From: Octopus sinensis
Taxonomy: Eukaryota
Direction: 5' to 3'
Assembly (NCBI RefSeq): GCF_006345805.1
Contig: NC_043010.1
Coordinates: 26,970,001-27,034,000, forward strand
DNA: 64,000 bases
Shown piece after piece: positions 4,198-60,166 of this stretch (position 1 is the first letter of the stretch; every line of letters begins with the position of its first letter). The translations under genes and the position numbers were made by a program. The notes under the pieces were generated by a model. It saw nothing but the letters and a program-made list of their open reading frames with translations, was not told where the DNA came from and did no database searches.

Positions 4198-4490
4198 ATA
4201 GTAATGTTTATATGCCAACAGAACGTGGCAGTCCTGTAAAGGACTATGTAATTGTTGTTGTAGCCCCAGGAAAACATCTTTTCCAGCTGGCTGCCATATA
4301 GCATTCACAAGGGACACAAACTGTGTATCGATAGCCAGCTGGAAAAGATGTTTTTCTGGGGCTACAACAACAGTAACAGTATAGGACAGTCCCACATTCT
4401 GTTGGTGTATAAACATTACTATCCTGGTACTATTACTGTAGATCCCTCACTCAGGGATTTAAAACAAGTTGTTTTTCTCTATATATGAAA
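4198..4490. repeat. Fold-back copy of the repeat family also at 32371-32725 (inverted arms 4198-4292 and 4333-4422)
   Basis: The arms are reverse complements (about 90 bp); both blocks are homologous to 32381-32440 and 32610-32725. Confidence 0.8.
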
Positions 4491-11396: not shown

Positions 11397-11433
11397 ATTG
11401 AAGCTTAAGAAGTTTCTGTTTTTTTCTTTTCAG

Positions 11434-11586
11434 GAGCATCTGAAGGAATTGGCTAACCTTGAACTGAATTGTGCTGATCCAACTCTGAAGGAAAAAACTT
11501 ACCTGAAACTGAGAGAAATAGAAAACGAGAGAAATAAACTGTTACAATTCAACAAAAAGAAGTGCATCAGTTTGCCAAAATTTGAG
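11434..11586 (+). CDS. CFAP99: CFAP99-like exon A (EHLKELANLELNCADPTLKEKTYLKLREIENERNKLLQFNKKKCISLPKFE)
   Basis: Polypyrimidine tract ttctgtttttttcttttcag then GAG; donor GAG|gtaaac; non-repetitive, charged, helical; joins in frame to exon B. Confidence 0.8.
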
Positions 11587-11980
11587 GTAAACCACACATT
11601 CTCTTTTCTCCTTTTGTTTCCTTCAAATCTCTCTCATCTGTCTTTTATAAACAGACTGGAAGAGAAAGATTTCAATGTTCTGACATACACTGTCTTTGCA
11701 GTTGTAATGCTTATGGTTAAAGGCCTGTTTGGTTAGAATTGACCAAGTGTTAAACAACCATAACAACAACAACTGCAAGACATAGAGTGAACCAATGGGA
11801 GAGCTTGTATTTGGTCACTTGACCTGCAAGAAATAGCAGCTAGATCTTCATGCACGTCTTTAAAAAGGAAGGAAGAACCTGACTATTGTAATTTTTAGAC
11901 ATACCATCTCTTCAACAAAAGAAAAAATGTAAAACTGGGCAAGTTAACCAAATCTAGAATGTCTTTGAAAATAAATCTAC

Positions 11981-16222: not shown

Positions 16223-16324
16223 GTGTATATATATTCATATATGAGTGGATAAACAAAAGGAGGGCACTCAACAAATTTATTGGGAGTTACATGTATGGAT
16301 CAAAACAGTTTGATTCAAATTTGT

Positions 16325-16365
16325 TGGTACTCTCAAGTTTCAAGCATGATGCTAGTCATCAGCCA
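16325..16365 (-). ncRNA. Type I hammerhead-ribozyme motif in a Penelope-like repeat
   Basis: Minus strand UGG-CUGAUGA-CU[AGCA uca UGCU]U-GAAA-CUUGAGAG-UA-CCA; stem II base imperfect. Confidence 0.55.
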
Positions 16366-17035
16366 TTTTGAATTGATTGTTATTACCATAAGGGGGGCTG
16401 CAATTGGTTGAGGAAGGTCACATGGTGTCCTGGTTTGATGTTGGTATATCGGTAACAGTTAGTTGGAAAATGCCTCATGGTGAACAAGAAATTGACCGTG
16501 TGGTGGACAGGAAATTGGTTGGGTTGTTGGAGGGGAAGTAGGAAGGGGGTGGTAACTCCTGTTGAGTTTTAACCCTTTGCACTCAGGTTCCTCAGCCCAG
16601 GACCGCAGCCTAGCATTCTGGCATAAAAGGCAAAGTCAGATATGAAAAATTGTGTCACCATAAATGGTATAAATGCCTACAGGAACATGGTTCAGCCAGT
16701 CAGGCTGGCTGGTGTGTAACCAAATGAGCTGAAACCTCCTTCTTAAATAGTCTACTTAAACCTTCTATGACAGAATAATGACAGAATAATAAATAGTGTT
16801 CCAATACACACACAGACGTACATACATACATACACCCATACATACATACATACATACATACATACATACATACATACATACATTCCTGATGATTCTCTGA
16901 AATGAGATGAAAGCACTAAATAAACAATTATTGAAAATTCTGAGAACCTCCTTTTACATATAAAATTTGTACACCACTTGAAGCAGTCTATACAGACATA
17001 CACACACACACACATATATATTATATATTATATAT

Positions 17036-18432: not shown

Positions 18433-18467
18433 TATATATATATATATATATGGATCAGAACAGTTTG

Positions 18468-18534
18468 ATTCAAATTCGTTGGTACTCTTGAGTTTCAAGC
18501 GTAATGCTAGTCGTCAGCCATTTTGAATTTGAAT
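18468..18534 (-). ncRNA. Type I hammerhead-ribozyme motif, second copy of the 16.3-kb family, with extended stem I
   Basis: Minus strand AUUCAAAUUC-aaaa-UGG-CUGACGA-CU[AGC auuac GCU]U-GAAA-CUC aa GAG-UA-CCA-ac-GAAUUUGAAU. Confidence 0.6.
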
Positions 18535-18638
18535 GATAGAAGTTGATTGTCGATTGGTCGAAGAAGGTCATGTGGTTTTGTGGTTTGATGTTGGTATATC
18601 GGTAACAGTTAGTTGGAAAATACCTCATATATATATAT

Positions 18639-21472: not shown

Positions 21473-22223
21473 TCTTACATTATTTACATCTGATGGATAT
21501 TTGTCCTCATCTTGTTTGTACAACATTTTGGCTGATATACCCTCCAGCCTTCATCAGGTGTCTTGGGGAAATTTTGAACCTGGGTTATCATTCCTAAGGT
21601 ATTTTTAGATGTTATTATTATTATTATTATTAATGAGTGAGAGAGCAGTGCATGCCATCAAAGTGACACTGGGGTAAAATATACGAAGCCCAATATACCC
21701 ATCATGACTACCCGTCTGATAAAGGTACACCAGGCACATGCATCACAACCATATGTGCGCGACATGGTGATCTCATATCAAGATAAACAGCACATGACCT
21801 TGCAGGTGGGGCCCAGTTAGAATTTTCTTCAGGTTGAGTAGCCCATCCCGCTCAAACGGTCCCTGAATAAGGGTTGTTTAAGGATGTTGAAAGAACCACC
21901 CATGTTTCCAGAGGTGAATTATTCAAACCCCAAAGAATCCCTCTCAACACATGGCTATGATGCTCCCCCACTACTTCTGCTCGTGATCAGAGATGCACAT
22001 ATCGTCAGCCACTAAGGGACATGCTCAACTGGTTACGGTCAAACAACTGACAAGCAAATCTGTGGTATTGAGCAGAATATTTGCTGTAGCCCATCTTTTA
22101 TACCAAGACAAAACAATGTACATGATAACACTTCCAATCAGTTAAGATCAGAAGCCATGAGAGCCACTGCCTGGTACTGCATCAGGGCATTTATTATTAA
22201 TATTATTATCATTATTATTATTA

Positions 22224-22845: not shown

Positions 22846-23166
22846 GTTCAGGTCACTGCTTGGAATCAAACTTAGAATCTTGGAGTTAGTAGCCTGCGCT
22901 TTTAGCCACTACGCCATATGCCCGTGGTTAAGAGCGCAGGCTACTAACCCCAAGATTCCGAGTTCGATTCCAAGCAGTGACCTGAACAATAATAATAATA
23001 ATAACATCGAAAAAATACCTTAGGAATGAAAACCCAGGTTCGATATTTCCCCAAGACACCTGAAGAAGGCTGGAAGGCATATCAGCCGAAAGGTGTTAAC
23101 AACAAACAAGATGAGGACAAATATCCGTCAAATGTAAATAATGTACATAATTCTTCATCTGTTAAA
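21473..23166. mobile_element. Head-to-head pair of a tRNA-headed element with a Penelope-type tail; the left copy is split by two insertions
   Basis: 21473-21615 is the reverse complement of about 22990-23166, and 22843-22908 that of 22924-22990. A box TGGCGTAGTGG, B box GAGTTCGATTCC; tail carries CTGA(A/T)GAAGGCTG...CAGCC(G/A)AAA. Confidence 0.7.
21634..22804 (-). mobile_element. Two near-identical 557/547-bp retroposon-like units inserted in tandem into an (ATT)n tract
   Basis: Copies at 21634-22190 and 22258-22804 differ by about five substitutions and a 10-bp indel; each is flanked by (ATT)n; no ORF. Confidence 0.8.
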
Positions 23167-25905: not shown

Positions 25906-26731
25906 CAATTGTTTCAATGTCCACATTTCCATTCTGGCATGGAGTGTATGGAATTTGCTGAACCAGATTTCCCCACAACCTGATGCCCTTCCTGTCACTA
26001 ATTCACACCTATTTCCAAGTAAGGCATTATTAACCTCATGACTGGACATGTTTCCATGGAAATGACAACTGCTTGGATGATGGCAACACTCATTTGCAAC
26101 TATCATATGGTGTCGAGCAAGGAGACACACATGCTCATAAATACATACATACATATATATATGTATATGTATGTAAGTGTGTGTAAAGATATATATATAT
26201 ATATGTACTTATAAATTAAGGATATAATCATTAAAATGATTGTATCAGTGGCTAGCGTATAAAAAAAGTGACCATATTTTGTAAATCTTCTTGCCCACTA
26301 CCTTGCATCCGACCTAGGGTTGTAAATAGAGAACTGATTTAGAGTGGATTGTAGGTATTTGACATCTACGTTTAGCATAAAGGTGCTGGTATTCTAGAGC
26401 CCTTAATTATATTTCATAATTATATACTTATATATATATATATATATATATGATGGGCTTCTTTCAGTTTCCATCTACCAAATCTACTCACAAGGCTCTA
26501 GTTGGCACAGGGCTGTATTAGAAGACACTTACCTAAGTTGCCATAGAGTAAGATTGAACCCAAAAGCACATTCTTGAGAAGTAAGTTTCTTATCCACACA
26601 CCCACACACTCAAGCTGTTCTGATGTGTCTCACTAACAGCCGCCATTAATTTAATTTAGTTTTTGTGAACCTAATTCTCATTTATCTAAAAAATGTCGTT
26701 AATCTATGCAATAATATTCTTCTATCTGCAG

Positions 26732-26817
26732 ACTCCAACACCTATTAAGATGACAAAAGCAGCTGTCCTCAGAGAAGGAAAAGTTCATTTAAAGGAAGAA
26801 GAAGCAGAACTAAAATG
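26732..26817 (+). CDS. CFAP99: CFAP99-like exon B (TPTPIKMTKAAVLREGKVHLKEEEAELK+TG)
   Basis: Acceptor tattcttctatctgcag; donor TG|gtaaat; absent from the ORF track (too short); phase 2 completes TGG with the next exon. Confidence 0.85.
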
Positions 26818-27109
26818 GTAAATTCAGAAATTTTATAAAAGTCAATAGAAATAAAGAATGTATCAGCTTATTTCCAAAACCATTTTCTCCATAACGAAAT
26901 ACAGTGAATGGCTTTCTTACACATTCAAATATGCCTCGAGCAGATTTGAACTGGTAATAACATTGCATTTATGCATATCACTGCTAGTCAGCCTGTATTT
27001 TATTTATGGTGAGCCACTGAATAGCACAACCAATCATTGAACAATGGTAAGAATATCATGAGATTGACCTGTCTCTCGTGTCAGTTTGCAGCACTTCCCT
27101 TTCTGGTGT

Positions 27110-27157
27110 TTGTAGCTGAAGAGGAGATAATCACTTTGAAATGCATGCATCCAACAG
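27110..27157 (+). ncRNA. Type I hammerhead-ribozyme motif, partly decayed
   Basis: UUGUAG-CUGAAGA-GGAG auaauca CUUU-GAA-AUGCAUGCAU-C-CAACAG: palindromic stem III, AUC triplet, G-U-rich stem II, one mismatch in stem I. Confidence 0.55.
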
Positions 27158-28145
27158 TCTAATTTGGGGGATACTGTGGACTGCCTTGTTGTATTTACAC
27201 CTATTTGTCTATAGTGAGAAATTTTCTCCATGACAAATTACAGGGAATGGTTTTCTCATGGGGTCAAATATGCCTCAAGCATATCTGAACTGCTAACAAG
27301 CTTGTATTTATACGTTAAGTCTGAATACAAGTTAGTGTGGTCACTGCTGGAACACCTTTCTTCATAAGTCTGAAGCTAAGCAACCACAACAATAACAACA
27401 CCATTAACAACAACACCAATAATAACAACAATAACGACGCCAATAACAACAACAACACCAATAACTACAACAACAACAACAATAACCACAACAATAACAA
27501 CAGCAGTAACAACAGCAATAACAACACCGATAGCAACAACAATAACAACAGCAATAACAACACCGATAACAACAACCACAACAATAACAATGACAAAGCA
27601 CTAATCTCCACCGAACTGATTCCTCCCTCATTTAATTGACTTCGTTTATCAAATTAATAAATGAGATCAGTAATGAATTGTTTGAGTAATTGTTCATTTT
27701 CACATCCACTGATTAGTAAATCCAACATTTCTGATTGTGTAATATATTGTTGTATTGGTGTAGGCGTGATTGTGTGATTGAGAAGTCTGCTTCCTAACCA
27801 CATGGTCTCAGGTTCAGTTCCACTGAGTGAAACCTCGGACAACTGTCTTCCATTGTAGCCCCAAGATATCCAAAAGCCTTGTGAATGGATTTGGCATACA
27901 GAAACTGCTAGAAGTCTACCATATATGAGTACACATGTGTGTGTATATATATTATCATCATCATCATCGTTTAACGTCTGTTTTCCATACTGGCATGGGT
28001 TGGACGGTTTGACTGAGGTCTGGAGAGCCAGCAACTGCACCAGGCTCCAATTTGATCTGGCAATGTTTCTACAGCTGGATGCCCTTCCTAATGCCAACCA
28101 CTCCAAGGGTGTAGTAGGTGCTTTTTATGTGCCACCAGCACAGTG

Positions 28146-28198
<53 letters not shown>

Positions 28199-28205
<7 letters not shown>

Positions 28206-28641
28206 ATACAGAGTACATTCAAACACAAAAGAGATATCCGAAGATTTTAATTAATGATAAAATGTTTTTTGGCTAATTCTGGAAGAAAATCAGCAATTTA
28301 TTTATTTAGTGCTGGTTGAGTTCCGCATCTGCGCAGTAAATTCGAAATATTAGAACCTATAGACACGTGGCTGATTACTTATAGCTCCATGTCTATGGAT
28401 TCAGTCTTGGCAACCTACTGAGGATGCAGCACCAGATATAGACTGAAATTATCTTATTTCAATCTGTATTTAAGTCTGCAGAAACCTTGCAGGGTCTAGG
28501 ATTAAAGTAAAAGTTTTTATTTTTCAATCACTTTCGGAATTACAATTGGTGGCTTGGAGTTTTAACTGCTCTTTCTAGCAAGTCAAGTATCCTATTCTTC
28601 GGGTATCTCTTTTGTGTTTGAATGTACACTGTATTCTTCTC
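28199..28641. mobile_element. 443-bp element with 45-bp inverted ends enclosing a hammerhead motif
   Basis: 28199-28243 and 28597-28641 are reverse complements with 2 mismatches. Confidence 0.8.
28414..28500 (+). ncRNA. Type I hammerhead ribozyme with long stem II
   Basis: CCUA-CUGAGGA-UGCAG...CUGCA-GAA-ACCUUGCAGGGU-C-UAGG; full core, GUC triplet, predicted cut after 28496; an inner hairpin (CAGAU/AUCUG, UGAAAU/AUUUCA) extends stem II. Confidence 0.75.
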
Positions 28642-28754
28642 TGAATAATATATAGTCTATTGACTAATCTTTTCTTTCTCGCTAGACCACTGGTAACTTA
28701 GAATTTTTCAATGAATATTCTTGCTACCCTAAGATTTTAATATATATATATATA

Positions 28755-29722
28755 TTCTTCTTAATCCTTTTTCGCCCCTTGTGGAGCATAGGGCCTCAAC
28801 AGTTGTTTTCTACTTTTTGCGGTCATTGGTGTGTTTCTTGGCTGCTTCCCATGTCAGGCTGGCAGTCCTGAGCTCGTCCAAAATTCTCCACTTCCATGTC
28901 TGCTTTGGGCATCCTCACTTCCTTTTCCCCTGCGGGTTCCAGTCAAGTGCTTGTCGTGTCACATTTGAGGGTTCTTTCCTCAGTGTGTGTCCGATCCATC
29001 TCCATTTCCTTCATCTAATCTGAACATGTATGGGCTCCTGGTTGGCCCTTTCCCAGAGGTTGGTGTTTGGCACTCTGTCGAACCACTTCAGATGGAGGAT
29101 CTGCCGGAAACATTTGTTGAATCTTCTTGTAGTTGCTGCAGGTGGCTCTCCATGTTTCAGAGCCATACAAAAGCACAGATTTTACGTTTGAACTAAATAA
29201 GCAGAGTTTAGTTTGAGTTGAGATGGCAGTGGACTTCAATACCAGCCAAAAAATAGTGAAGGCTTGCCAAGCTTTCTTGCTTCTTGCCGTGATGTCCTCG
29301 TCTGATCCACCTGATTTGCTGATCTTGCTGCCAAGATAGACAAACTCACTAATGTCCTCCACAGGTGCCCCCTCGATTGTGATTGACTCTTCCTGCTTGT
29401 TGTTGATACACAGCACTTTTGTTTTTTCCACCTGATCCTCAAGCCCACTTGTCATGAAGTTTCTGTCAGGTGGTCTACCTGCATGTCTTGCAGGCGATAT
29501 GACAGGAGTGTGAGATCATCTGCTTAGTCCAAGTCCTCCAGCTTGTTCATCAGTGTCCACTGAATACCTATCCTAGAGGTAGCATAGGCCGTCCTGGTGA
29601 CCTAGTCCAGCACGATGAGGAACAGGAGTGGTGACAACAAACAGCCCTGTCTGACTACCATGCTGACCCTGAATTCCTCCGACAATCTCCCAGCATGGAT
29701 GACCTGGCAAGAAAACCCCTCG
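28755..29722 (-). mobile_element. 5'-truncated RTE LINE of a second subfamily (no PHD insert), decayed
   Basis: Minus strand QGCLLSPLLFLIVL...LEDLD*ADDLTL...EFVYLGSKIS...LLYGSETW; short aagaagaa tail at about 28755. Confidence 0.88.
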
Positions 29723-31491
29723 TATATATACACATATATATACTATGGGCTTCTTTCAGTTTCTGTCTATCAAATCCACTCACAAGGCTTTGGTTGGTCT
29801 GAGGCTATAGTAGAAGACACTTGCCCAAGGTGCCACACAGTGGGACTGAACCCGGAACCATGTGGTTGGGGAGCAAGCTTCTTACCACACAGCCACGCTT
29901 GTGCCTATAATATTTAGATGATATAATATAATACGATATAATCCTTTCTACTGAAGGCACAAGGCCTGAAATTTTGGGGGAGGGAACCAGTCAATTATAT
30001 CGACCCCCGTGTTTTACTGGTACTTAATTCATCAACCTTGAAAGGATGCCAGGCAAAGTCAACTGTGGCAGAATTTGAACCCAGAACATTAAGACTGACG
30101 AAATACCACTTAGCATTTTGCCCAGTGTGCTAACATTTCTGCCAGCTTGCTATCTTATAATCATCATCATCATCATCATTTAACGTCCGCTTTCCATGCT
30201 GGCATGGGTCGGGCAGTTTGAGGACTGGCGAGCCAGAAGGATGCACCAGGCTCCAATCTGATCTGGCAAAGATTCTACAGCCTGATGCCAACCACTCCAA
30301 GAGTGTAGTGGGTGCTTTTATGTCCCACTGGCACGAGGACCAGTCAGGCAGTACTGGCAACGACCACGCTCAAAGGTGTTTTTTACATGCCACCTTTTTA
30401 CATGGCACTGGCAACGACCACATCCTTTTCTATTCTAGGCACAAGGCCTGAAATTTTGAGGGCGGGTCCAGTCAAGTAGATGGACCCCAGTATGCAACTG
30501 GTACTTAATTTATCGACCCGAAAGGATGAAAAGTTGACCTCGGCGGAATTTGAACTCAGAACATAAAGACAGATGAAATACCGCTAAGACTTTTGCCTAG
30601 CATGCTAATGATTCTGCCAGCTCACTGCTTGATATGATATTATATGATATCGTATAATATTGTATAATAAAATATGATGTATTATGTGTTTAGCTTTTGT
30701 TGATAACCTTGAAGCTTAATATGCTTTAAAGATATAACATTGCCTTAATAAGAGGCTTAAATTTAAAATAACACATCAAGTAGTTGGTGAACCATCAAAG
30801 CACCCCATCTTTACGGAACGCTTCAAAATAGTGGTTGGGGGAGGGTAGCAGAATACCATAGTAGAATACCTATCTGCTGAGGTACCATAAATATTCTGAG
30901 AAACTAAATGCAATATTTTGTAGAAGTGGAAATAGCTTATATTTATAGTTAACAGATGAAAGCGGCAGTTGGTTTGAGGTATAATCATTAGCATGTTTCT
31001 TCCAGACTATGATAGATATATAGATATCAGGTTGGAGTCTCTCATCTATTCTTTTTCTGTCCCAGTGTATATGGTGATATATGTGAATGTATATAAATGT
31101 GTAGACCACATCTGTATATGATCTGATTATGTGTGTGTTTGTGTGTGTGTAGCTGTCTAAAAATCCATGCGTCAGAACAAAACTGGCACTCATATATTGG
31201 TGTACATAATTGTTAATAAGACTTTTTTTCAATCATTACTCAACTTCTAGTAAGAAGCTAATTGGCTGTTTTGAGAACATTTTAATAATAATAATGATGA
31301 TTTCATTTATTTGCCACAAGGGCAAAGGGTGAGGGGGATAATACAAAGACAGACATAAAGTATAGGGGTTTGCATATAATGAAATGATAAAAAAGCAAAA
31401 TAAAAGGAAGTATACATGGTATACACTGAAAAAAAAAGAACATATGCATAGCATACAAAGATATAAAGGCTTAATAATGCATTATTATTAT

Positions 31492-31572
<81 letters not shown>

Positions 31573-31587
31573 GAGAGAGAGAGAGAG

Positions 31588-32111
31588 ATGAGTAACAAAG
31601 ACGTGTAAGTTTCACTACATTACAGCCGTTTCAAGTGACTCCTTTAATTGATTGATGAAAGCATTACATCATTACAAAGGAAACCATTCTCATCAGATGA
31701 CTGCATAGGCATCATGCATAAAGGACAAGTTAGATATTTAAACATATTCATATCATCAACAGAGAGCAAATATTGACAATGATTCCACTGCTAAAATTTT
31801 TGGCAGAATGCAAAAGAGATAGTACAGCGAGAAACAAACCACAGATTAGCATATTTCTGATTTGTCTGTTGCTGTACTGTCTCTTTTGCATTCTGCCAAA
31901 AATTTTAGCAGTGGAATCATTGTTAATATTTGCTCTCTGTTGATGATATGAATATGTTTAAATATCTAACTTGTCCTTTATGCATGATGCCTATGCAGTC
32001 ACCTGATGAGAATGGTTTCCTTTGTAATGATGTAATGCTTTCATCAATCAATTAAAGGAGTCACTTGAAACAGCCGTAATGTAGTGAAACTTAAACAGCT
32101 TTGTTACTCAT
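31588..32111. repeat. 524-bp near-perfect palindrome (241-bp arms, 42-nt spacer); each arm has a hammerhead-like motif (31618-31699 -, 32000-32081 +)
   Basis: The arms differ at only a handful of positions; CUGAUGA...GAAAC-(GGCU/AGCC)-GUA-AUG in each. Confidence 0.9.
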
Positions 32112-32518
32112 TTATATTTTACTCACCTACCCTGAAATCTGCACTTTGGAATTATTGGAAAATATCTTTATATAAAGTACTTGTTTGAACAAACAAGAGT
32201 GGATTTATTCACTAAGTTGGATCATACCATCTGCATACACTGCATGAATATCGGATGGAAAAAATTCTATGTAGAGTTTGATAATCATCTGATACTGTCT
32301 GAGTGTGTAAATAAGCTCATTCTAACAAGGTGCCTCAATTTAAGTACCTAATTCAACTGAATCTAAATTACATTTCTGTTGGTACTGTTACTGTAGATCT
32401 CTCACTCAGAGATTTAAAACAAGTTGTTTTTCTTTATATGAGATCAGCGACTGTGTGTCACTTAAAGAATATATATCATTTGAGAGTGGAGATAGCTTTC
32501 ATCACTAGCTTGTGGTTA

Positions 32519-32563
32519 ACTCACACTGAGGACGGATAACATCCAGAAACTTGGTCTGTGAGT
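32519..32563 (+). ncRNA. Minimal type I hammerhead ribozyme
   Basis: ACUCACA-CUGAGGA-C[GGAU aac AUCC]A-GAAA-C uug G-UC-UGUGAGU: 7-bp stem I, full core, GUC triplet, predicted cut after 32556. Confidence 0.8.
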
Positions 32564-32721
32564 ATCGCGTAAGGCTAGAGATGAGAGCAATGATCTCCCT
32601 TGCAAATGCTATAAGGACACAAACTGTGTTGACAGCCAGCTGGAAAAAATGTTTTCCTGGGGCTATAACAACAATAACATTGTCCTATATAGGACTGCCA
32701 CATTCTGTTGGTATATAATAT

Positions 32722-32773
<52 letters not shown>

Positions 32774-32886
32774 GTATATATATATGCACTCACATACATA
32801 CATATATATATATGCATATATGTATTTTAAACAGTTTGAGTCAGCTCTTCATTGGATGTAGGACACATCCATTTTTTCAGATGTTT

Positions 32887-32944
32887 CTGAACATCTGATG
32901 AGATGGATTTGTCCTACTTCCATGAAACTTAAAGTAATGTTGAG
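32887..32944 (+). ncRNA. Minimal type I hammerhead ribozyme
   Basis: AACAU-CUGAUGA-G[AUGGA...UCCAU]-GAA-ACUU a AAGU-A-AUGUU; palindromic stem III, GUA triplet, predicted cut after 32936. Confidence 0.72.
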
Positions 32945-33299
32945 TTGAGTTAAACTGTTATTAAATACATGTAGTTCCAATCAAATCTATTGAATGCTAT
33001 TTTATTTCATTTATTCAGTCTGTCTGTCCTGTTTTTGTTCCCAACTTAGACCCTCCATAAATCTCAAATTTTATTTTGGTACTTATGGGAGCAACTGTCT
33101 TTGAAGACTCATATTGTCATTCAGTGCTCGAAATGAGGAGTAGAAAGACAGCTGACAACTGATGAAGGTTCATTGTTTATATTACTTGTCCTGTTTTCCA
33201 TTTGTTTCTCTTGTTTGTGTATTGAACTCATTTGTTTTCGTATTTCATGTTGTTTACTGTTGTCCTGTACCCATACATGCATGCACACACACATACACA

Positions 33300-33341
<42 letters not shown>

Positions 33342-33478
33342 TTATTTATATTATTGTCTATATATATATATATATATATACAAACACATCTTTTATATCT
33401 TGTGTGTGTGTGTATAAATATGTAAATATATATGAAAATAAATATATGCATTTATTCATTTGTATGTTTGTTTTCAAG

Positions 33479-33683
33479 GCTTGAGGAACTGGAAAAAGGA
33501 GGAAAAGAAGACAGGCAGTTTGTGAAATGGCAGAACACAATGAAAGAACAAGATATGAAACAGTCAATGTTAGAATTGGAGAAGCTACGATTAAAATCGA
33601 AAATCATTCGAGAGGATGCCATTCTAGCAAAAGAGAAACTACAGGAAGAGAATCGACGCACAGTGCTGCAATTGAAACAAGAA
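33479..33683 (+). CDS. CFAP99: CFAP99-like exon C (LEELEKGGKEDRQFVKWQNTMKEQDMKQSMLELEKLRLKSKIIREDAILAKEKLQEENRRTVLQLKQE)
   Basis: Acceptor tgtttgttttcaag; donor GAA|gtaaga; lies within ORF 33432..33704. Confidence 0.9.
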
Positions 33684-34029
33684 GTAAGATTCTTCACTTC
33701 ATAATAATTTCATATGAGATTCTTCACCTCATATTCAACCTAATGCCCTTCAGACAAAGGACATTAAGTTGAGGAAATCAGTACCTTACCGTCTTTAGTT
33801 TAATTCTCTTTATGTTTGGAATTCGAATCCTGCCATGTTTCACTTCACCTTTGAACCTTCTAGGATCAATAAAACAGGATCTAAGTTCACCCTGGCAAAG
33901 CTGGGTGGTTAAGGATTTTGATTTACAAGGACATCTTTATGTTGATCTCACTGCCTGACACCTTGAGCAAGTATCTTCATCTTTTGCCTTAGATTGGTCA
34001 ATAATTTGTAAATGAAATTAAGATGGAAG

Positions 34030-40320: not shown

Positions 40321-40978
40321 AGCACTCAATCAGTTACGACAACAAGGGTCCCAGCTGATATAATCAATGGAACTCCTTGCTTGTGAAATCAACGTAGTTC
40401 TCAGGGAGATTCAGTGTGACAGTGTAACAAGGCTGTCCCTTTGAAATAAAGGTACTACTCAGTTTTGCGAGCTGAGTGGACTGGAGCAATGGGAAATAAA
40501 GTGTCTTGCTGAAGGGACATGACGCATCACTGGGAATTGAACTCATGACCTTACGATTTTGAGGCAAATGCCCTAACCACTAAGCCATGTGTGTATATAT
40601 ATATACATATATAAATGAAAAGTGTATAAACAAACAATATAATGTGTACTGAATGTAAAAACGAACGGGAGACAAACAGGTCCATAATTTTTCTTGTGTA
40701 GAATTAGGGACAAGAGCAAACAAAACGAGCAACTGACACAGAGTGTGATTTTGGACAGTGGACGGGTACGAACAGTCGAACAAAATACAGCCTTGGGGCC
40801 AAGGAGATTAGAATAGTGGGTAATGCTTATGGATTAAAACAGATGTAAGTTCAAATAAATTTGTTGAGTCTCCTTCTTTCGTTTGCCCACTCACTTGTGT
40901 GTATATATATGTAGAGAGAGAGAGGCGGGGCAAGAGTGAGATAAACAAATACTTTCAGAGTATCATGATATATTGTAG

Positions 40979-41061
40979 GAAGGTCGTTCAAGAGGTTGCA
41001 GAAAGTCAAAAAACGGTAAAAGATGCCAAGAAAAAAGTGCATGAACAGAAGAAGAAAATAG
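40979..41061 (+). CDS. CFAP99: CFAP99-like exon E (KVVQEVAESQKTVKDAKKKVHEQKKKI+G)
   Basis: Donor G|gtaagt. Acceptor atattgtag is weak but is phase-compatible with exon D (AA+G = Lys). Confidence 0.8.
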
Positions 41062-41146
41062 GTAAGTTTAGCTTTTTTTTTTATCTCTACATCTGTTTTA
41101 TTATTTGGGTATACATACATATATGTCTATATACATATATACATTA

Positions 41147-43760
41147 TATGGGTGACTTTAACTTCCCCAATGTGGAATGGCCTGGGGGGGCAGATGCTCT
41201 CAGGGATGACACACCATCAGCAGGCACAGGCAGAGTCCCTGCTCCATCTCACAAATGCCTCTTTCATGGAGCAAATAGTTCTGCAACCAACAAGGGCAGA
41301 TAATATACTGGATCTCTGCTTCACAAACAATATGGATATTATCCATAATGTTAATGTGATGCCGACAATGATCTCAGATCACAACATAATAGAGCTGTCT
41401 ATGTATGGAACAAAAGCTCCCGTAGACACACAGCCTATACGAAGCATCCACCATCTCTCCAACTTAAACTTTCATAAAGCCAACTGGAAGTTGATTGAGA
41501 AAGAGATCCTCAAACAGGATTGGCCTAAATGTCTCTCCACACCAGACATTAACATGAAACACAAACACTTCATGTCCATAATACAAGCCATATGTGACAA
41601 ATATGTCCCAGTGTGCAGGGCCAGCACACACAAGAACAAAAACAGGATCCCTAGAGAAAGGAAGATTCTTATGAGACGACGGACAAGGATTGCGAACCGC
41701 CTGAGCAAGCACACCAAAAGTGGTGAGAAGTCTCGGCTTGAAAGAATGCTAATGGAAACTGAGAAAAGTCTGCATCAGTCCCATGAAAAGGAGAGAGCAG
41801 ATAAAGAAGCTTGGGTAATAGAAAATATAAAATCAAACCCTAAAGCTTTCTTTGAGTTTGCCAAAGAGACAGCCACAGTGCACCAGAGAATAGGACCTCT
41901 CTTCCAAAAAGATGGCTCTCTCACAGGAAATCACATGAGGATAAGTGAAATACTGAACGAACAGTTCCAAAGTGTGTTCACTACACCTCTAGGACACAGG
42001 CAAGTAAACAACCCAGAAGAATGCTTTGCCACTTTACCTGCGGCCAAAGAGGCAAAAATTGAGTACATCAACATCGAAGATGATGATATCACACTAGCCA
42101 TAGATGAGATTGACACAAACTCAGCTGCTGGACCTGATGGATTCCCGGCGATCCTTCTCAAATCGTGCAAACGAGCCCTTGCAAAACCGCTACAGCTTCT
42201 TTTTCAGAGCTTTCTTGCAAGTGGTAAGCTCCCAGTCAAATTGAAAGAGGGGGTAATATGCCCTATCCATAATGGAGGTAGCAGAGCAGATGCTAAAAAT
42301 TATAGGCCTATCTCTCTGACCTCACACATCAGCAAAGTCATGGAATGAATAGTCCATAAGAAACTAATCATGTTCCTTGAAGAAAATGACTTGCTGTCTG
42401 ACACCCAGCATGGATTTCGACCAGGTAGAGGCTGCCTAACACAGATCCTGCAACACTATGACTGGGTGTTGAAACAGCTACTAAATGGCTCAAATGTGGA
42501 TGTAATATATCTCGACTTTGCAAAAGCCTTTGATAAAGTCGACCATGGTATGATCTGTCACAAACTGAGTGGTCTCGGCATAGGCGGAAAACTTGGAGAG
42601 TGGCTGCACAACTTCCTAAAAGACAGAAAACAGGCAGTTGTGAGCAATGGAGCCACCTCCAAGGAAACACAAATAACAAGCGATGTCCCACAGGGTCTTC
42701 GGGCCACTGGTGTTCATAGTGGCCCTTTCAGACATGCCTTCAGTTGCTACGATGACCACCCTTGCTAGCTATGCAGATGACACAAAAGTCTCCCACGCAA
42801 TACAAAACCCTGAAAATATTGCGCATCTGCAACAGGAGTTGGACGCAATATACAGGTGGGCTGAGGACAACAACATGCAGTTTAATGCAGGTAAGTTCCA
42901 GGCCCTGCGCTACCAGCACACATAGGTAAACAACGTGCAGATTGGATACACTGGCCCAGGAAGAATTGCAATCCCTGAGTCAAAATCAGTGCATGACCTG
43001 GGCATTGACATGAGTAATGATGCATCTTTCCAAGTGCATATTACTAATCTGGTGATAAAATGCAGACGGCTAGCTGGATGGATTCTCCGAACTTTCAGAA
43101 TAAGAGAGAAGGAGACACTGATGGTCCTATGGAAAACATTCATCCTCAGCCGCTTGGACTACTGCTCCCAACAGTGGTCACCACACAATATAAAACTAAC
43201 AGCAGAACTCGAAGCAATTCGGAGAAGCTACACAAAGAAAATCGTCTCAATGCAAAATATCAGCTGCTGGGAAAGACGGAAAGTATTAAACCTCTTCTCC
43301 CTAGAGCGGAGGCGAGAGAGATATGCGGTGATATACATCTGGAAAATCCTGGAGGGTCTTGTCCCAAACTTTGGCATTCAAAGTTACCCCAACCGTAGAA
43401 CGGGGCGCCACTGCATGGTGCCAAAGATTCCAACATCACCATCAAAATACAGGTCCACATACTGCAACAGCTTGGGTTTCAGAGGACCACAGGTCTTTAA
43501 CATCCTCCCTAAATGCCTGAGAGACTTTCATGGTGTGGATGTGGGTTTCTTTAAAACTAAACTGGATCTCTTCTTGTTGGGAGTCCCAGATGAACCTACC
43601 TCACGACTGGAGACGCAGATGCGGGCAGCAGCATCGAACTCCTTTGTTGATCAAGTGCCACGTATCAGAGGTGGATTCACATATTAGTGTAGCTCATTCA
43701 GCGGTGGTGCCCCAGCATGGCTACGGCCTTCGGGCTAAAACATTTTTAAGGAATTTAAGG
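41147..43760 (+). mobile_element. 5'-truncated, lightly decayed CR1-like LINE (end of APE, RT, C-terminus, ttaaggaat tail)
   Basis: GDFNFPNVEW, PTRADNILDLCFTN, YLDFAKAFDKVDH, DVPQG, YADDTK and SLERRRERY; only about four frame disruptions in 2.5 kb. Confidence 0.9.
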
Positions 43761-44595: not shown

Positions 44596-44789
44596 AAAAT
44601 TGTCCCTATGCAAATATTTACTCCCAAAACTTTTGTTGCATCATAACTCACTCACAGTTTAGGTACCTAGGGGTCATAACTTGATTAAGCAAGTGATTTA
44701 TCAAGTTATGACCCCTAGGTACCTAAACTGTGAGTGAGTTATGATGCAACAAAAGTTTTGGGAGTAAATATTTGCATAGGGACAATTTT
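44596..44789. repeat. Perfect 90-bp inverted repeat with a 14-nt spacer
   Basis: 44596-44685 is the exact reverse complement of 44700-44789. Confidence 0.95.
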
Positions 44790-45432: not shown

Positions 45433-45446
45433 TATATCTGATCTGG

Positions 45447-45542
45447 CAGTCATTCATCAGGTGGTTTCAAATTTTTCTTGGCGAGTTTTAAACAATGAAC
45501 TAACTCGCCAAGAAAAATTTGAAACCACCTGATGAATGACTG
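45447..45542. repeat. Perfect 41-bp inverted repeat with a 14-nt spacer
   Basis: 45447-45487 versus 45502-45542; the right arm overlaps a hammerhead core. Confidence 0.95.
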
Positions 45543-45587
45543 TGACTCAAAAATTTGATGACAGTAGCCAGGAAACGATCGTAGTGG
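45525..45587 (+). ncRNA. Hammerhead-like motif with a defective stem II junction
   Basis: CCAC-CUGAUGA-...ACUGU..ACAGU...-GAA-ACGAUCGU-A-GUGG; perfectly palindromic stem III; base of stem II unpaired. Confidence 0.5.
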
Positions 45588-52997: not shown

Positions 52998-53040
52998 CCA
53001 CTACAATCGTTTCTTGTCTTGATCGACAATCTTCAGGTGG
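52998..53040 (-). ncRNA. Minimal type I hammerhead ribozyme, antisense to CFAP99
   Basis: CCAC-CUGAAGA-UUGUC gaucaa GACAA-GAAA-C gauu G-UA-GUGG; all core positions intact, all three stems paired. Confidence 0.8.
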
Positions 53041-55265: not shown

Positions 55266-55365
55266 NNNNNNNNNNNNNNNNNNNNNNNNNNNNNNNNNNN
55301 NNNNNNNNNNNNNNNNNNNNNNNNNNNNNNNNNNNNNNNNNNNNNNNNNNNNNNNNNNNNNNNNN
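55266..55365. other. Assembly gap (100 N)
   Basis: Run of n; the true size is unknown. Confidence 0.99.
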
Positions 55366-58424: not shown

Positions 58425-59969
58425 CTGTCCTTCTGGATTCCTTAGCATGACCAGCAGAGATCATTAGATATTGTCCAAGCATCTTGTTCTTGGTCTCCTC
58501 TTATGTCTCCTGCCACTTGGCTCAGCTTGAAGAATCCATCTTGCGACCCTTTCCTGTGGCATTCTAACCCATATTTCATAGTACCTAAGCTGTTACCTCT
58601 CAATGCAGAAAAGTGATGGCTCAACCTACTCTTTACCTGCTAAGGTTGACTTTGCCTTTCATTACTTCAGGGTAGATAACATAAAATACCAGTCATGTAT
58701 TGGGGAAAGGATACAACTAACCCCCACTACCACCACCACCACCCTCTAAAATTGCTGGCCTTGTGTCTCAATCAAAAAAATTTCATGTGGATACTCATCA
58801 TCATCATCATCATTGTTTAACGTCTGCTTTCCATGCTGGCATGGGTTAGATGGTTTGACTGAGGACTGGCGAGCCAGGAGGCTGCATCAGGCGCCAATCT
58901 GATCTGGCAGTGTTTCTACAGCTGGATGCCCTTCCTAACGCCAACCACTCCGAAAGTGTACTGGGTGCTTTTTATGCGCCACTGGCACAGGAGCCAGTCA
59001 GGTGGCACTGTGCCAGTGGCCATGTTCGGATGGTTGGTGCTTTTATATGTGTTACCAGCACAGGAGCCAGTCAGGGAGGTGGGGGGCTGGCATCGACTAC
59101 CTTTAGATGGTGCTTTTTATGTGCCACCGGTACAGGGAGCCAGTCAGGTGACACTGACGATGACCCATGCTTCTCAACCACACCTACTATCACCCCACTG
59201 GTCCATTGTTGATTATGATGACAAAGGTTCCAGTTGATCCGATCAATGGAACAGCTTGCTTGTGAAATTAACATGTAAGTGGCTGAGTATTCCACAGATG
59301 CATATAATGTTAATGTAGTTCTCAGGGAGATTCAGCTTGACACAGAATGCAACATAGCTGACCCCCTTTGAATTACAGGTACAACTAATTTTTGTCAGCT
59401 GAGTTGACTGGAGTAACATGGAATAAAGTGTCTTGCTCAAGAACACAATGCATCACCAGGAATTGAACTCACAACTTTACAATCATGAGCTGATTACGCT
59501 AACCACTAAGCTATGTGTCTTCATTTTCACCCTACACCACTAAAACCACGATCACTGACATCTCCACCACTAAACATTACCCTAACCACCTCCTCCACTA
59601 CCATCACCTCCACCATCACCTCTTCTGCCACTACCATCATCACCTCCACCACCATCATCACCTCCACCACCACCATCACCTCCACCTCCACCATCACCTC
59701 CACCATCACCACCACAATCACCTCTTCTACCACCACCATCATCACCTAGTCTACTACTATCATCTTCACCTTCATCACTTCCACCACCACCATCATCACC
59801 TCCTCCACCATCACCATCTCTGCAGTTTAATCATTGCATTTCATCTGGTCTTTATTCTTTTTTTTTGTTTTTTTTTTTTTTTGGTTCTCTTCTTTCTCTT
59901 CTGCTCGTCCCTTTTGTCTTTCTCTCCGTTTCTTCAAATTTTTTTCTTTCTGTTCTTTCTTCTCTGCAG

Positions 59970-60166
59970 TGCAGGATGTGCAGCGAGGCAAACAAGAGCT
60001 GAATGCAGCTGCCCTGGAGAATGCTACAATAGAGATGGAGAAGAGACTTGAGATCATCGATCGCATCCGTGTGTTGACGGCCACACAACAGTATCACAAC
60101 ACCAAGCTGTTTGACACCACAGAGACTTCCGGATTAGGGTTACTCAGTGAAATGTCCCTGGCTGAG
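59970..60166 (+). CDS. CFAP99: CFAP99-like exon F (QDVQRGKQELNAAALENATIEMEKRLEIIDRIRVLTATQQYHNTKLFDTTETSGLGLLSEMSLAE)
   Basis: Long T/C tract ending ctctgcag; G+TG completes Val; donor GAG|gtaggt; carries the GLLSEMSLAE motif. Confidence 0.9.

Follow-up and report, generated by a model that had tools for sequence, protein, structure and literature searches.

Minimal type I hammerhead ribozymes (HHRs) are carried by Penelope-like retroelements (PLEs) and by metazoan retrozymes. A short palindromic helix III marks both those type I hammerheads of metazoans that work as dimers and the minimal hammerheads in PLE terminal repeats, and a self-complementary helix III is diagnostic for the two kinds (PMC4209133; PMC6765202). 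Minimal PLE hammerheads are extremely diverse within a genome and occur mostly as solitary copies, which are taken as truncated PLEs (PMC4209133; PMC6765202); "Dual min-HHRs" lying 100-700 bp apart on opposite strands have also been reported (PMC4209133). Described features of PLE insertions are copies of more than one unit, a truncated copy in inverted orientation at the upstream end and microsatellites as targets (PMC8557442). Metazoan retrozymes are defined by ~300-nt units with one type I hammerhead (PMC7229834), and a preprint derives retrozymes from PLE termini (Li et al. 2026). In Octopus vulgaris, PLEs are an annotated order of transposable elements (TEs) that expanded long ago, at a Jukes-Cantor distance of ~0.2 (PMC13282606). 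Here we describe five hammerhead motifs (M1 to M5) in one intron of the ciliary gene CFAP99 of Octopus sinensis, within a stretch of 64,000 nt (RefSeq assembly GCF_006345805.1, contig NC_043010.1, positions 26,970,001-27,034,000; hereafter the window, with positions counted from its first nucleotide). A first-pass annotation of this DNA had pointed out the five motifs, had placed them among the minimal type I hammerheads of PLEs and retrozymes, and had suggested that the pre-mRNA cleaves itself repeatedly in this intron, which would tune splicing or release small RNAs. Our analysis indicated that the motifs are not chance matches and that they are likely to be relics of retroelement insertions, and it gave no support to self-cleavage of the pre-mRNA.

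Five type I hammerhead motifs in one CFAP99 intron

The intron in question (26818-33478) lies between CFAP99 exons B and C. All five motifs were found on its + strand with a CUGANGA...GAAA...UH core in type I order, that is, helix I 5' strand, CUGANGA, helix II hairpin, GAAA, helix III, UH and helix I 3' strand. This confirmed the positions given in the first-pass annotation, and the five cleavage sites that it had predicted all fitted the layout of the motifs. The core was complete in M1-M5 and in two further motifs of the window, H45 and H53: each has C3-U4-G5-A6-N7-G8-A9, G12-A13-A14, an A15.1-U16.1 pair and an H17 that is not G. As had also been claimed, M1-M5 differ in sequence, and blastn detected no mutual similarity among them.

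M1 (27110-27157) is a minimal type I motif with CUGAAGA, helix II GGAG/CUUU, GAAA, the helix III sequence UGCAUGCA, which is a perfect 8-nt palindrome, and UC, with predicted cleavage after C27151; its helix I has five pairs around a single A/A mismatch. M2 (28414-28500) is the cleanest of the five and combines CUGAGGA, a helix II of 5 bp (UGCAG/CUGCA) closing a long imperfect hairpin, GAAA, CCUUGCAGGG and UC, with a helix I of 4 bp (CCUA/UAGG) and predicted cleavage after C28496. Its helix III sequence (CCU-UGCA-GGG) can form A-U, C-G, C-G and U.G pairs with a UGCA loop. M3 (32000-32081), which has decayed, lies in the right arm of a foldback and has CUGAUGA, a long, imperfect and wobble-rich helix II, GAAA, CAGCCG and UA (predicted cleavage after A32078); its helix I is weak, with at most 3 bp and a broken 1.1-2.1 pair. 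The left foldback arm holds a mirror motif on the - strand, with its core at 31696 and helix III CGGCUG. M4 (32519-32563) is compact, with CUGAGGA, helix II GGAU/AUCC, GAAA, CUUGG and UC (predicted cleavage after C32556) and a helix I of 7 bp. In M5 (32887-32944), CUGAUGA is followed by helix II AUGGA/UCCAU, GAAA, CUUAAAG and UA (predicted cleavage after A32936), and helix I has 5 bp.

The window contains one minimal hammerhead that is cleaner than any of these, H53 (52998-53040, - strand, core at 53036), which reads CCAC-CUGAAGA-UUGUC/GACAA-GAAA-CGAUUG-UA-GUGG and lies in the 19-kb CFAP99 intron. H45 (45525-45587, + strand, core at 45529), in the same intron, reads CCAC-CUGAUGA...GAAA-CGAUCG-UA-GUGG and has a disrupted helix II. 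H45 and H53 belong to one repeat family with a common ~120-nt 3' region, and H45 is preceded by a 100-nt hairpin (45445-45545).

At positions 10.1-11.1 the motifs carry G.U (M1 and M3), U-A (M2 and H53), A-U (M5) or, immediately before helix II of M4, a C/A mismatch that is a single CpG-type transition from a C-G pair; G10.1-C11.1 was absent from all of them. An unpaired base between A9 and 10.1 was seen in M5, as a bulged G, and in a repeat at 23060; M1, M2 and M3 do not have it, and M4 has its mismatch instead. Helix III is self-complementary in M1, M2, M4, M5, H45, H53 and the M3 mirror (UGCAUGCA, CCUUGCAGGG, CUUGG, CUUAAAG, CGAUCG, CGAUUG and CGGCUG, respectively), whereas CAGCCG of M3 itself is two transitions away from self-complementarity. 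A single CpG-type transition separates each of the two foldback-arm sequences, CAGCCG and CGGCUG, from the perfect palindrome CGGCCG, and CpG-type decay was seen in several of the motifs.

Sequences of this kind could in principle be chance matches, since CUGANGA, GAAA and UH are low in information and AT-rich, repeat-rich introns supply stems. A covariance-model search of the locus, one of the checks put forward in the first-pass annotation, came out negative: with the Rfam hammerhead models, neither the whole window nor 1-2-kb pieces surrounding the motifs yielded a match, whether the gathering score or E<=10 was applied. H53, a clean minimal motif, was likewise missed by Rfam in a 121-nt search, and the Rfam negative therefore has little power for minimal forms and does not discriminate. 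Since, in addition, published work on minimal hammerheads relied on structure descriptors and not on covariance models (PMC4209133; PMC8557442), this negative was not regarded as decisive and descriptors were written. The first descriptor was written before the details of the motifs were inspected and did not require a self-complementary helix III. As a null, the same real sequence was scanned with all 720 combinations of scrambled core boxes, which preserves all repeats and stems. Under strict settings the first descriptor found three matches versus a scrambled-core mean of 0.035, and under relaxed settings ten versus 1.3, with the true core ranked first in both cases; dinucleotide shuffles yielded 0 strict and 0.52 relaxed matches per strand.

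A second descriptor took up features reported by Cervera and de la Pena, allowing an unpaired base after A9 and requiring helix III to be self-complementary; it found three matches versus none in 719 scrambled-core controls. When one irregularity in helix II was allowed, there were five matches (M2, M4 and M5 on the + strand, H53 and the M3 mirror on the - strand), and loosening helix I as well added M1, giving six; the corresponding control means were 0.011 and 0.028, with a maximum of 1. The descriptor search, also put forward in the first-pass annotation, was positive. With every descriptor the real core came out on top of the 720 core pairs, and a self-complementary helix III proved common to the motifs although the first descriptor had not asked for it. 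Some results do speak for chance: M1, with its interrupted helix I, and M3 on the + strand (though not its mirror) fail the stricter descriptors, the reversed sequence, in which stems are kept, gave one borderline match, and CTGANGA is over-represented, with 52 occurrences on both strands versus ~27.5 in shuffles. Part of this excess comes from the active-site codons of reverse transcriptase (RT; GCTGATGAC) and from other TE copies. CTGATGA or CTGACGA lies inside such codons (..GCT GAT GAC..) in three copies of long interspersed nuclear elements (LINEs), at 656 (+), 37506 (+) and 62583 (-). RT codons in TE-rich DNA thus inflate raw counts of hammerhead boxes, and the excess does not account for the structured matches. 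As a set, the motifs are not chance; for the whole set that explanation is largely refuted, and we hold it to be very improbable.

A further candidate was a C/D-box small nucleolar RNA (snoRNA), since CUGAUGA holds a C box and weak matches to snoR21 and Afu_264 were obtained. It was rejected: N7 varies among A, G and U, no downstream D box with a terminal stem was present, and GAAA, the palindrome, UH and helix I fit a hammerhead only.

Host repeats and origin of the motifs

Each motif sits in its own small repeat. That of M1 (26882-27311, + strand) consists of a ~339-nt unit and a partial second copy (26882-26972 resembles 27221-27311 at 79% identity), with an (AAC)n-type microsatellite downstream at 27382-27596. 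Inverted repeats of 47 nt (28198-28244 and 28596-28642), complementary at 96%, delimit the M2 element (28198-28642), which lies directly 3' of an (AT)n(AG)n tract at 28146-28202. M3 and its mirror occupy the foldback at 31566-32133, whose 281-nt arms (31566-31846 and 31853-32133) are 91% complementary and arranged head-to-head, and directly upstream of it is (AT)n(AG)n at 31496-31588. This is an opposite-strand hammerhead pair, as in the reported dual min-HHRs. M4 lies in a ~330-nt unit (32376-32712, + strand) with the order A-X-B, X holding the hammerhead, which ends at a (TA)n tract (32712-32825); at 4203-4484, a relative has the circularly permuted order B-A, with an inverted B adjoining it. 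In all, the repeats of M2, M3, M4 and M5 adjoin (AT)n(AG)n or (TA)n tracts, head-to-head inverted copies were found at M2, at M3 and in the relative of the M4 unit at 4203-4484, and more-than-unit or permuted copies at M1 and M4.

The short self-complementary helix III, the mutual difference of the motifs and their separate repeats all favour the assignment made in the first-pass annotation, namely minimal type I hammerheads of the PLE and retrozyme kind. Judged by architecture and motif style, the motifs resemble these hammerheads and probably derive from them. We consider it likely that M1-M5 are genuine, evolutionarily derived minimal type I hammerheads which came from separate insertions of PLE or non-LTR retrozyme type (LTR, long terminal repeat) and are now decayed passengers. 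According to this proposal, each motif would have arrived with its own insertion of a small non-coding piece of such an element, either a 5'-truncated 3' end or a non-autonomous unit. In the active element, as the literature suggests, the hammerhead would cut multimeric element transcripts, and cleavage as a dimer through the self-complementary helix III would provide unit-length RNA for reverse transcription. The insertions would have landed beside (TA)n/(GA)n microsatellites and beside each other, and would later have decayed through CpG transitions and the acquisition of non-canonical 10.1-11.1 pairs. An intronic location is ordinary for such elements, since ~43% of Xenopus retrozyme copies are in introns (Li et al. 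2026 preprint).

Mobile elements of other classes might also have brought in hammerhead-like sequence of non-PLE descent, for instance miniature inverted-repeat transposable elements (MITEs), foldback DNA transposons, or short interspersed nuclear element (SINE)-like carriers of the Schistosoma Sm-alpha type. The 47-nt terminal inverted repeats around M2, the 281-nt foldback at M3, the abundance of Tc1/mariner and SINE copies in the window and the lack of a PLE open reading frame (ORF) in it would agree with such an origin. Against this, hammerheads are not known from DNA transposons. Furthermore, PLEs have been described with inverted copies placed head-to-head, with more-than-unit copies and with microsatellites as targets (PMC8557442), and the style of the hammerheads matches that of PLE and retrozyme motifs. 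We regard these other classes as an unlikely source.

Several results weigh against a PLE or retrozyme derivation, besides the silence of the Rfam models. No RT/GIY-YIG ORF was found in the window, where the 48 ORFs with 110 aa or more gave RVT_1 (LINE-type, with PHD) and DDE_3 but no GIY-YIG in a Pfam scan; the link to PLEs is therefore drawn entirely from architecture and motif style. G10.1-C11.1, missing from every motif, is described as highly conserved (Cervera and de la Pena), and the typical unpaired base after A9 is found in M5 only among the five. Each locus has only 1.1-1.3 units (unit sizes 339 and ~330 nt) and a single hammerhead, in place of the tandem pair that defines a retrozyme. 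Finally, five of the six best descriptor matches fall within 10% of the window, a clustering that was seen post hoc; it fits a target preference, with insertion beside microsatellites and earlier copies.

Fate of the motifs in the CFAP99 pre-mRNA

If one or more of the motifs had been co-opted, they would cleave the CFAP99 pre-mRNA co-transcriptionally and modulate splicing, expression or the release of small RNAs. The sense orientation and clustering of the five motifs can be read in this way, as can the conserved sense-strand intronic hammerheads of RECK, CTCL and DTNB (PMC6155905). The orientation of the five motifs was confirmed, whereas a strand bias was not: without M3, which is present on both strands, the bias is 4:0 (two-sided p=0.125, not significant), and window-wide there are ~7 sense to 5 antisense motifs.

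Structure predictions were also unfavourable. With flanks of 12-40 nt, the hammerhead fold was 3-30 kcal/mol worse than the local minimum free energy structure for all five motifs, and in all five the CUGANGA core was predicted to pair elsewhere when folded within the host repeat. The core of M5 lies in the stem of a predicted hairpin (32853-32922), and in the predicted foldback of M3 (-421 kcal/mol) 93 of the 96 motif bases pair with the other arm. The substitutions by which the two arms of the M3 foldback differ disrupt pairing in the sense copy and are not compensatory. No tertiary contacts between helix I and helix II were recognisable in the five motifs, and minimal PLE hammerheads showed no cleavage as monomers and weak cleavage as dimers in vitro (PMC4209133). 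Homodimers are excluded within a single transcript, and since their helix III sequences differ the five motifs cannot dimerise among themselves there; heterodimers between different motifs were considered and rejected, the helix III sequences not being mutually complementary in register.

Since the cores lie in competing predicted structures and the G10.1-C11.1 pair is missing, self-cleavage of the CFAP99 pre-mRNA is unsupported and, on these models, unlikely. The repeated self-cleavage put forward in the first-pass annotation, together with the tuning of splicing and release of small RNAs that would follow from it, consequently found no backing, and the motifs, locked in such structures, would cleave very little or not at all. 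The best candidate for any cleavage is M2, because its helix III (four pairs and a tetraloop) could stand alone, and it is the only motif for which we would expect any activity as a monomer. It is nevertheless highly unlikely, in our view, that M2 or another sense motif cleaves the transcript as it is made, and that the cluster acts as a brake or processing site in the transcript of a ciliary gene. Milder and likelier would be that octopus genomes hold minimal hammerheads, on the order of 10^5, that are invisible to covariance models.

A separate observation concerns the foldback at 31566-32133, which, with its 281-nt arms, is predicted to form double-stranded RNA of -421 kcal/mol in the pre-mRNA. 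A long intronic duplex of this type could plausibly be a substrate of ADAR, and octopuses are known for heavy adenosine-to-inosine editing.

The wider locus and known hammerhead systems

The gene was identified through the peptide encoded by spliced exons B and C. This peptide is similar to CFAP99 of PDB 9ijj_J (residues 295-387, E=1.9e-12), also matches Chlamydomonas FAP99, and is 100% identical to CFAP99 of O. sinensis and O. vulgaris; a Pfam search of it returned no domain, and the name of the gene was thus taken from the PDB and homologue searches. By homology, the window is part of the O. sinensis/O. vulgaris CFAP99 gene on the + strand, a gene that spans 255 kb in O. vulgaris. Exons were placed by tblastn, all on the + strand, at about 11431-11589, 26726-26817, 33479-33686, 40974-41036 and 59969-60166. 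Exon B (26726-26817) encodes residues ~302-330 of the O. sinensis protein at 100% identity and is followed by a GT donor at 26818, and exon C (33479-33686) encodes residues 331-398. Given this placement and the gt and ag at its ends, 26818-33478 is a 6.66-kb GT-AG intron whose sense strand is the + strand. The 21-residue exon at 40974-41036 (residues 417-437 of the O. sinensis CFAP99 model) adjoins LINE endonuclease/RT ORFs (40899-42348) and is absent from the tblastn matches of the O. vulgaris and O. bimaculoides CFAP99 models; it may be an exonised or mis-annotated segment. The 19-kb intron contains a 100-N assembly gap at 55266-55365.

Repeats make up most of the 6.66-kb intron. They comprise SINE copies with 9-15 relatives in the window, a LINE fragment, microsatellites in four blocks and the five repeats that carry the motifs, and 2305 of the 6661 nt of the intron have a further copy in the window. 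The LINE fragment is our reading of an antisense ORF (29015-29455, - strand) with the Pfam domain DUF6451. Homologues of the LINE RT of the window were ENA proteins, 50-61% identical and not evidently from octopus.

Other hammerhead-like sequences were seen upstream. In the 15-kb intron, the first-pass annotation had described the intact-looking motifs as antisense and the sense copy as decayed. This held only in part: the sense copy at 23060 keeps both boxes, and in the antisense copy at 21557 GAAA has become AAAA. These two belong to inverted repeat copies at 21476-21631 (-) and 22985-23145 (+) that carry CUGANGA-A-GGCUG...CAGCC-GAAA, with both the bulge and a G10.1-C11.1 pair, and that have no usable helix III or cleavage site downstream; two SINE-like units of ~624 nt, arranged in tandem and ending in (AAT)n, separate the copies. 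The ~190-nt direct repeats at 16288-16478 and 18443-18628 (90% identical, 2155 nt apart), situated around a Tc1/mariner DDE_3 fragment, each contain an imperfect hammerhead-like motif on the - strand; a single CpG-type transition separates each of their helix III sequences, CUUGAG and CUCAAG, from CUCGAG. On both strands, a near-perfect palindromic hairpin of ~190 nt at 44596-44789 matched the plant MIR2619 model with 68-71 bits; it is nearly certain to be a foldback or MITE rather than a microRNA gene. Microsatellites of (TG)n/(TA)n account for the many matches to mir-297, mir-466 and similar models elsewhere in the window.

For the biology of CFAP99 the motifs most likely have no effect, although they supply concrete predicted cleavage coordinates in a ciliary gene. 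Their wider interest lies in the abundance and turnover of ribozyme-bearing PLE and retrozyme elements in octopus genomes. If our reading is correct, minimal retroelement hammerheads would be common in cephalopod introns and standard annotation with Rfam covariance models would miss them; the giant squid genome paper reportedly listed only 235 Hammerhead_1 matches. It would also follow that a scrambled-core control on real sequence can separate true minimal motifs from chance matches.

Among described systems, the minimal PLE hammerheads (Cervera and de la Pena 2014, PMC4209133) share with the octopus motifs the type I order, a short or absent, self-complementary helix III, a short helix I of 3-7 bp, a helix II that is long in some cases and, in M5, the unpaired base after A9. 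They also share sequence diversity in one genome, mostly solitary copies, opposite-strand pairs a few hundred bp apart and host repeats with inverted or partial tandem copies beside microsatellites. In contrast to them, the octopus motifs have neither a flanking RT/GIY-YIG ORF within the window nor G10.1-C11.1, and helix III of M1 and M2 (8-10 nt) is longer than in the minimal form with "no helix III". Non-LTR retrozymes (Cervera and de la Pena 2020, PMC7229834; Li et al. 2026 preprint) likewise have low-GC units, here of ~330-340 nt, with one type I hammerhead each, as well as more-than-unit or circularly permuted copies (M1 and M4 here) and, in Xenopus, frequent intronic monomers. They differ in that two or more units of 150-450 bp stand in tandem, each holding a hammerhead, and in having canonical loop-loop contacts.

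The intronic hammerheads of amniotes (RECK, CTCL and DTNB; Rfam HH9/HH10) are also sense-strand type I motifs in introns of protein genes and are thought to be retroelement-derived. HH9 and HH10 are, however, canonical, highly conserved, active, single and detectable with covariance models, whereas the five octopus motifs are mutually unrelated, degenerate and without an Rfam match. The schistosome Sm-alpha and Sj-alpha SINE-like elements are, like the host repeats described here, short non-coding interspersed repeats with a type I hammerhead; they are single families of high copy number that have Pol III promoters and whose ribozymes are canonical and active, while in the octopus intron each motif has a different repeat. 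The elements found in CFAP99 are thus of a known kind, in a new host and with a new set of members.

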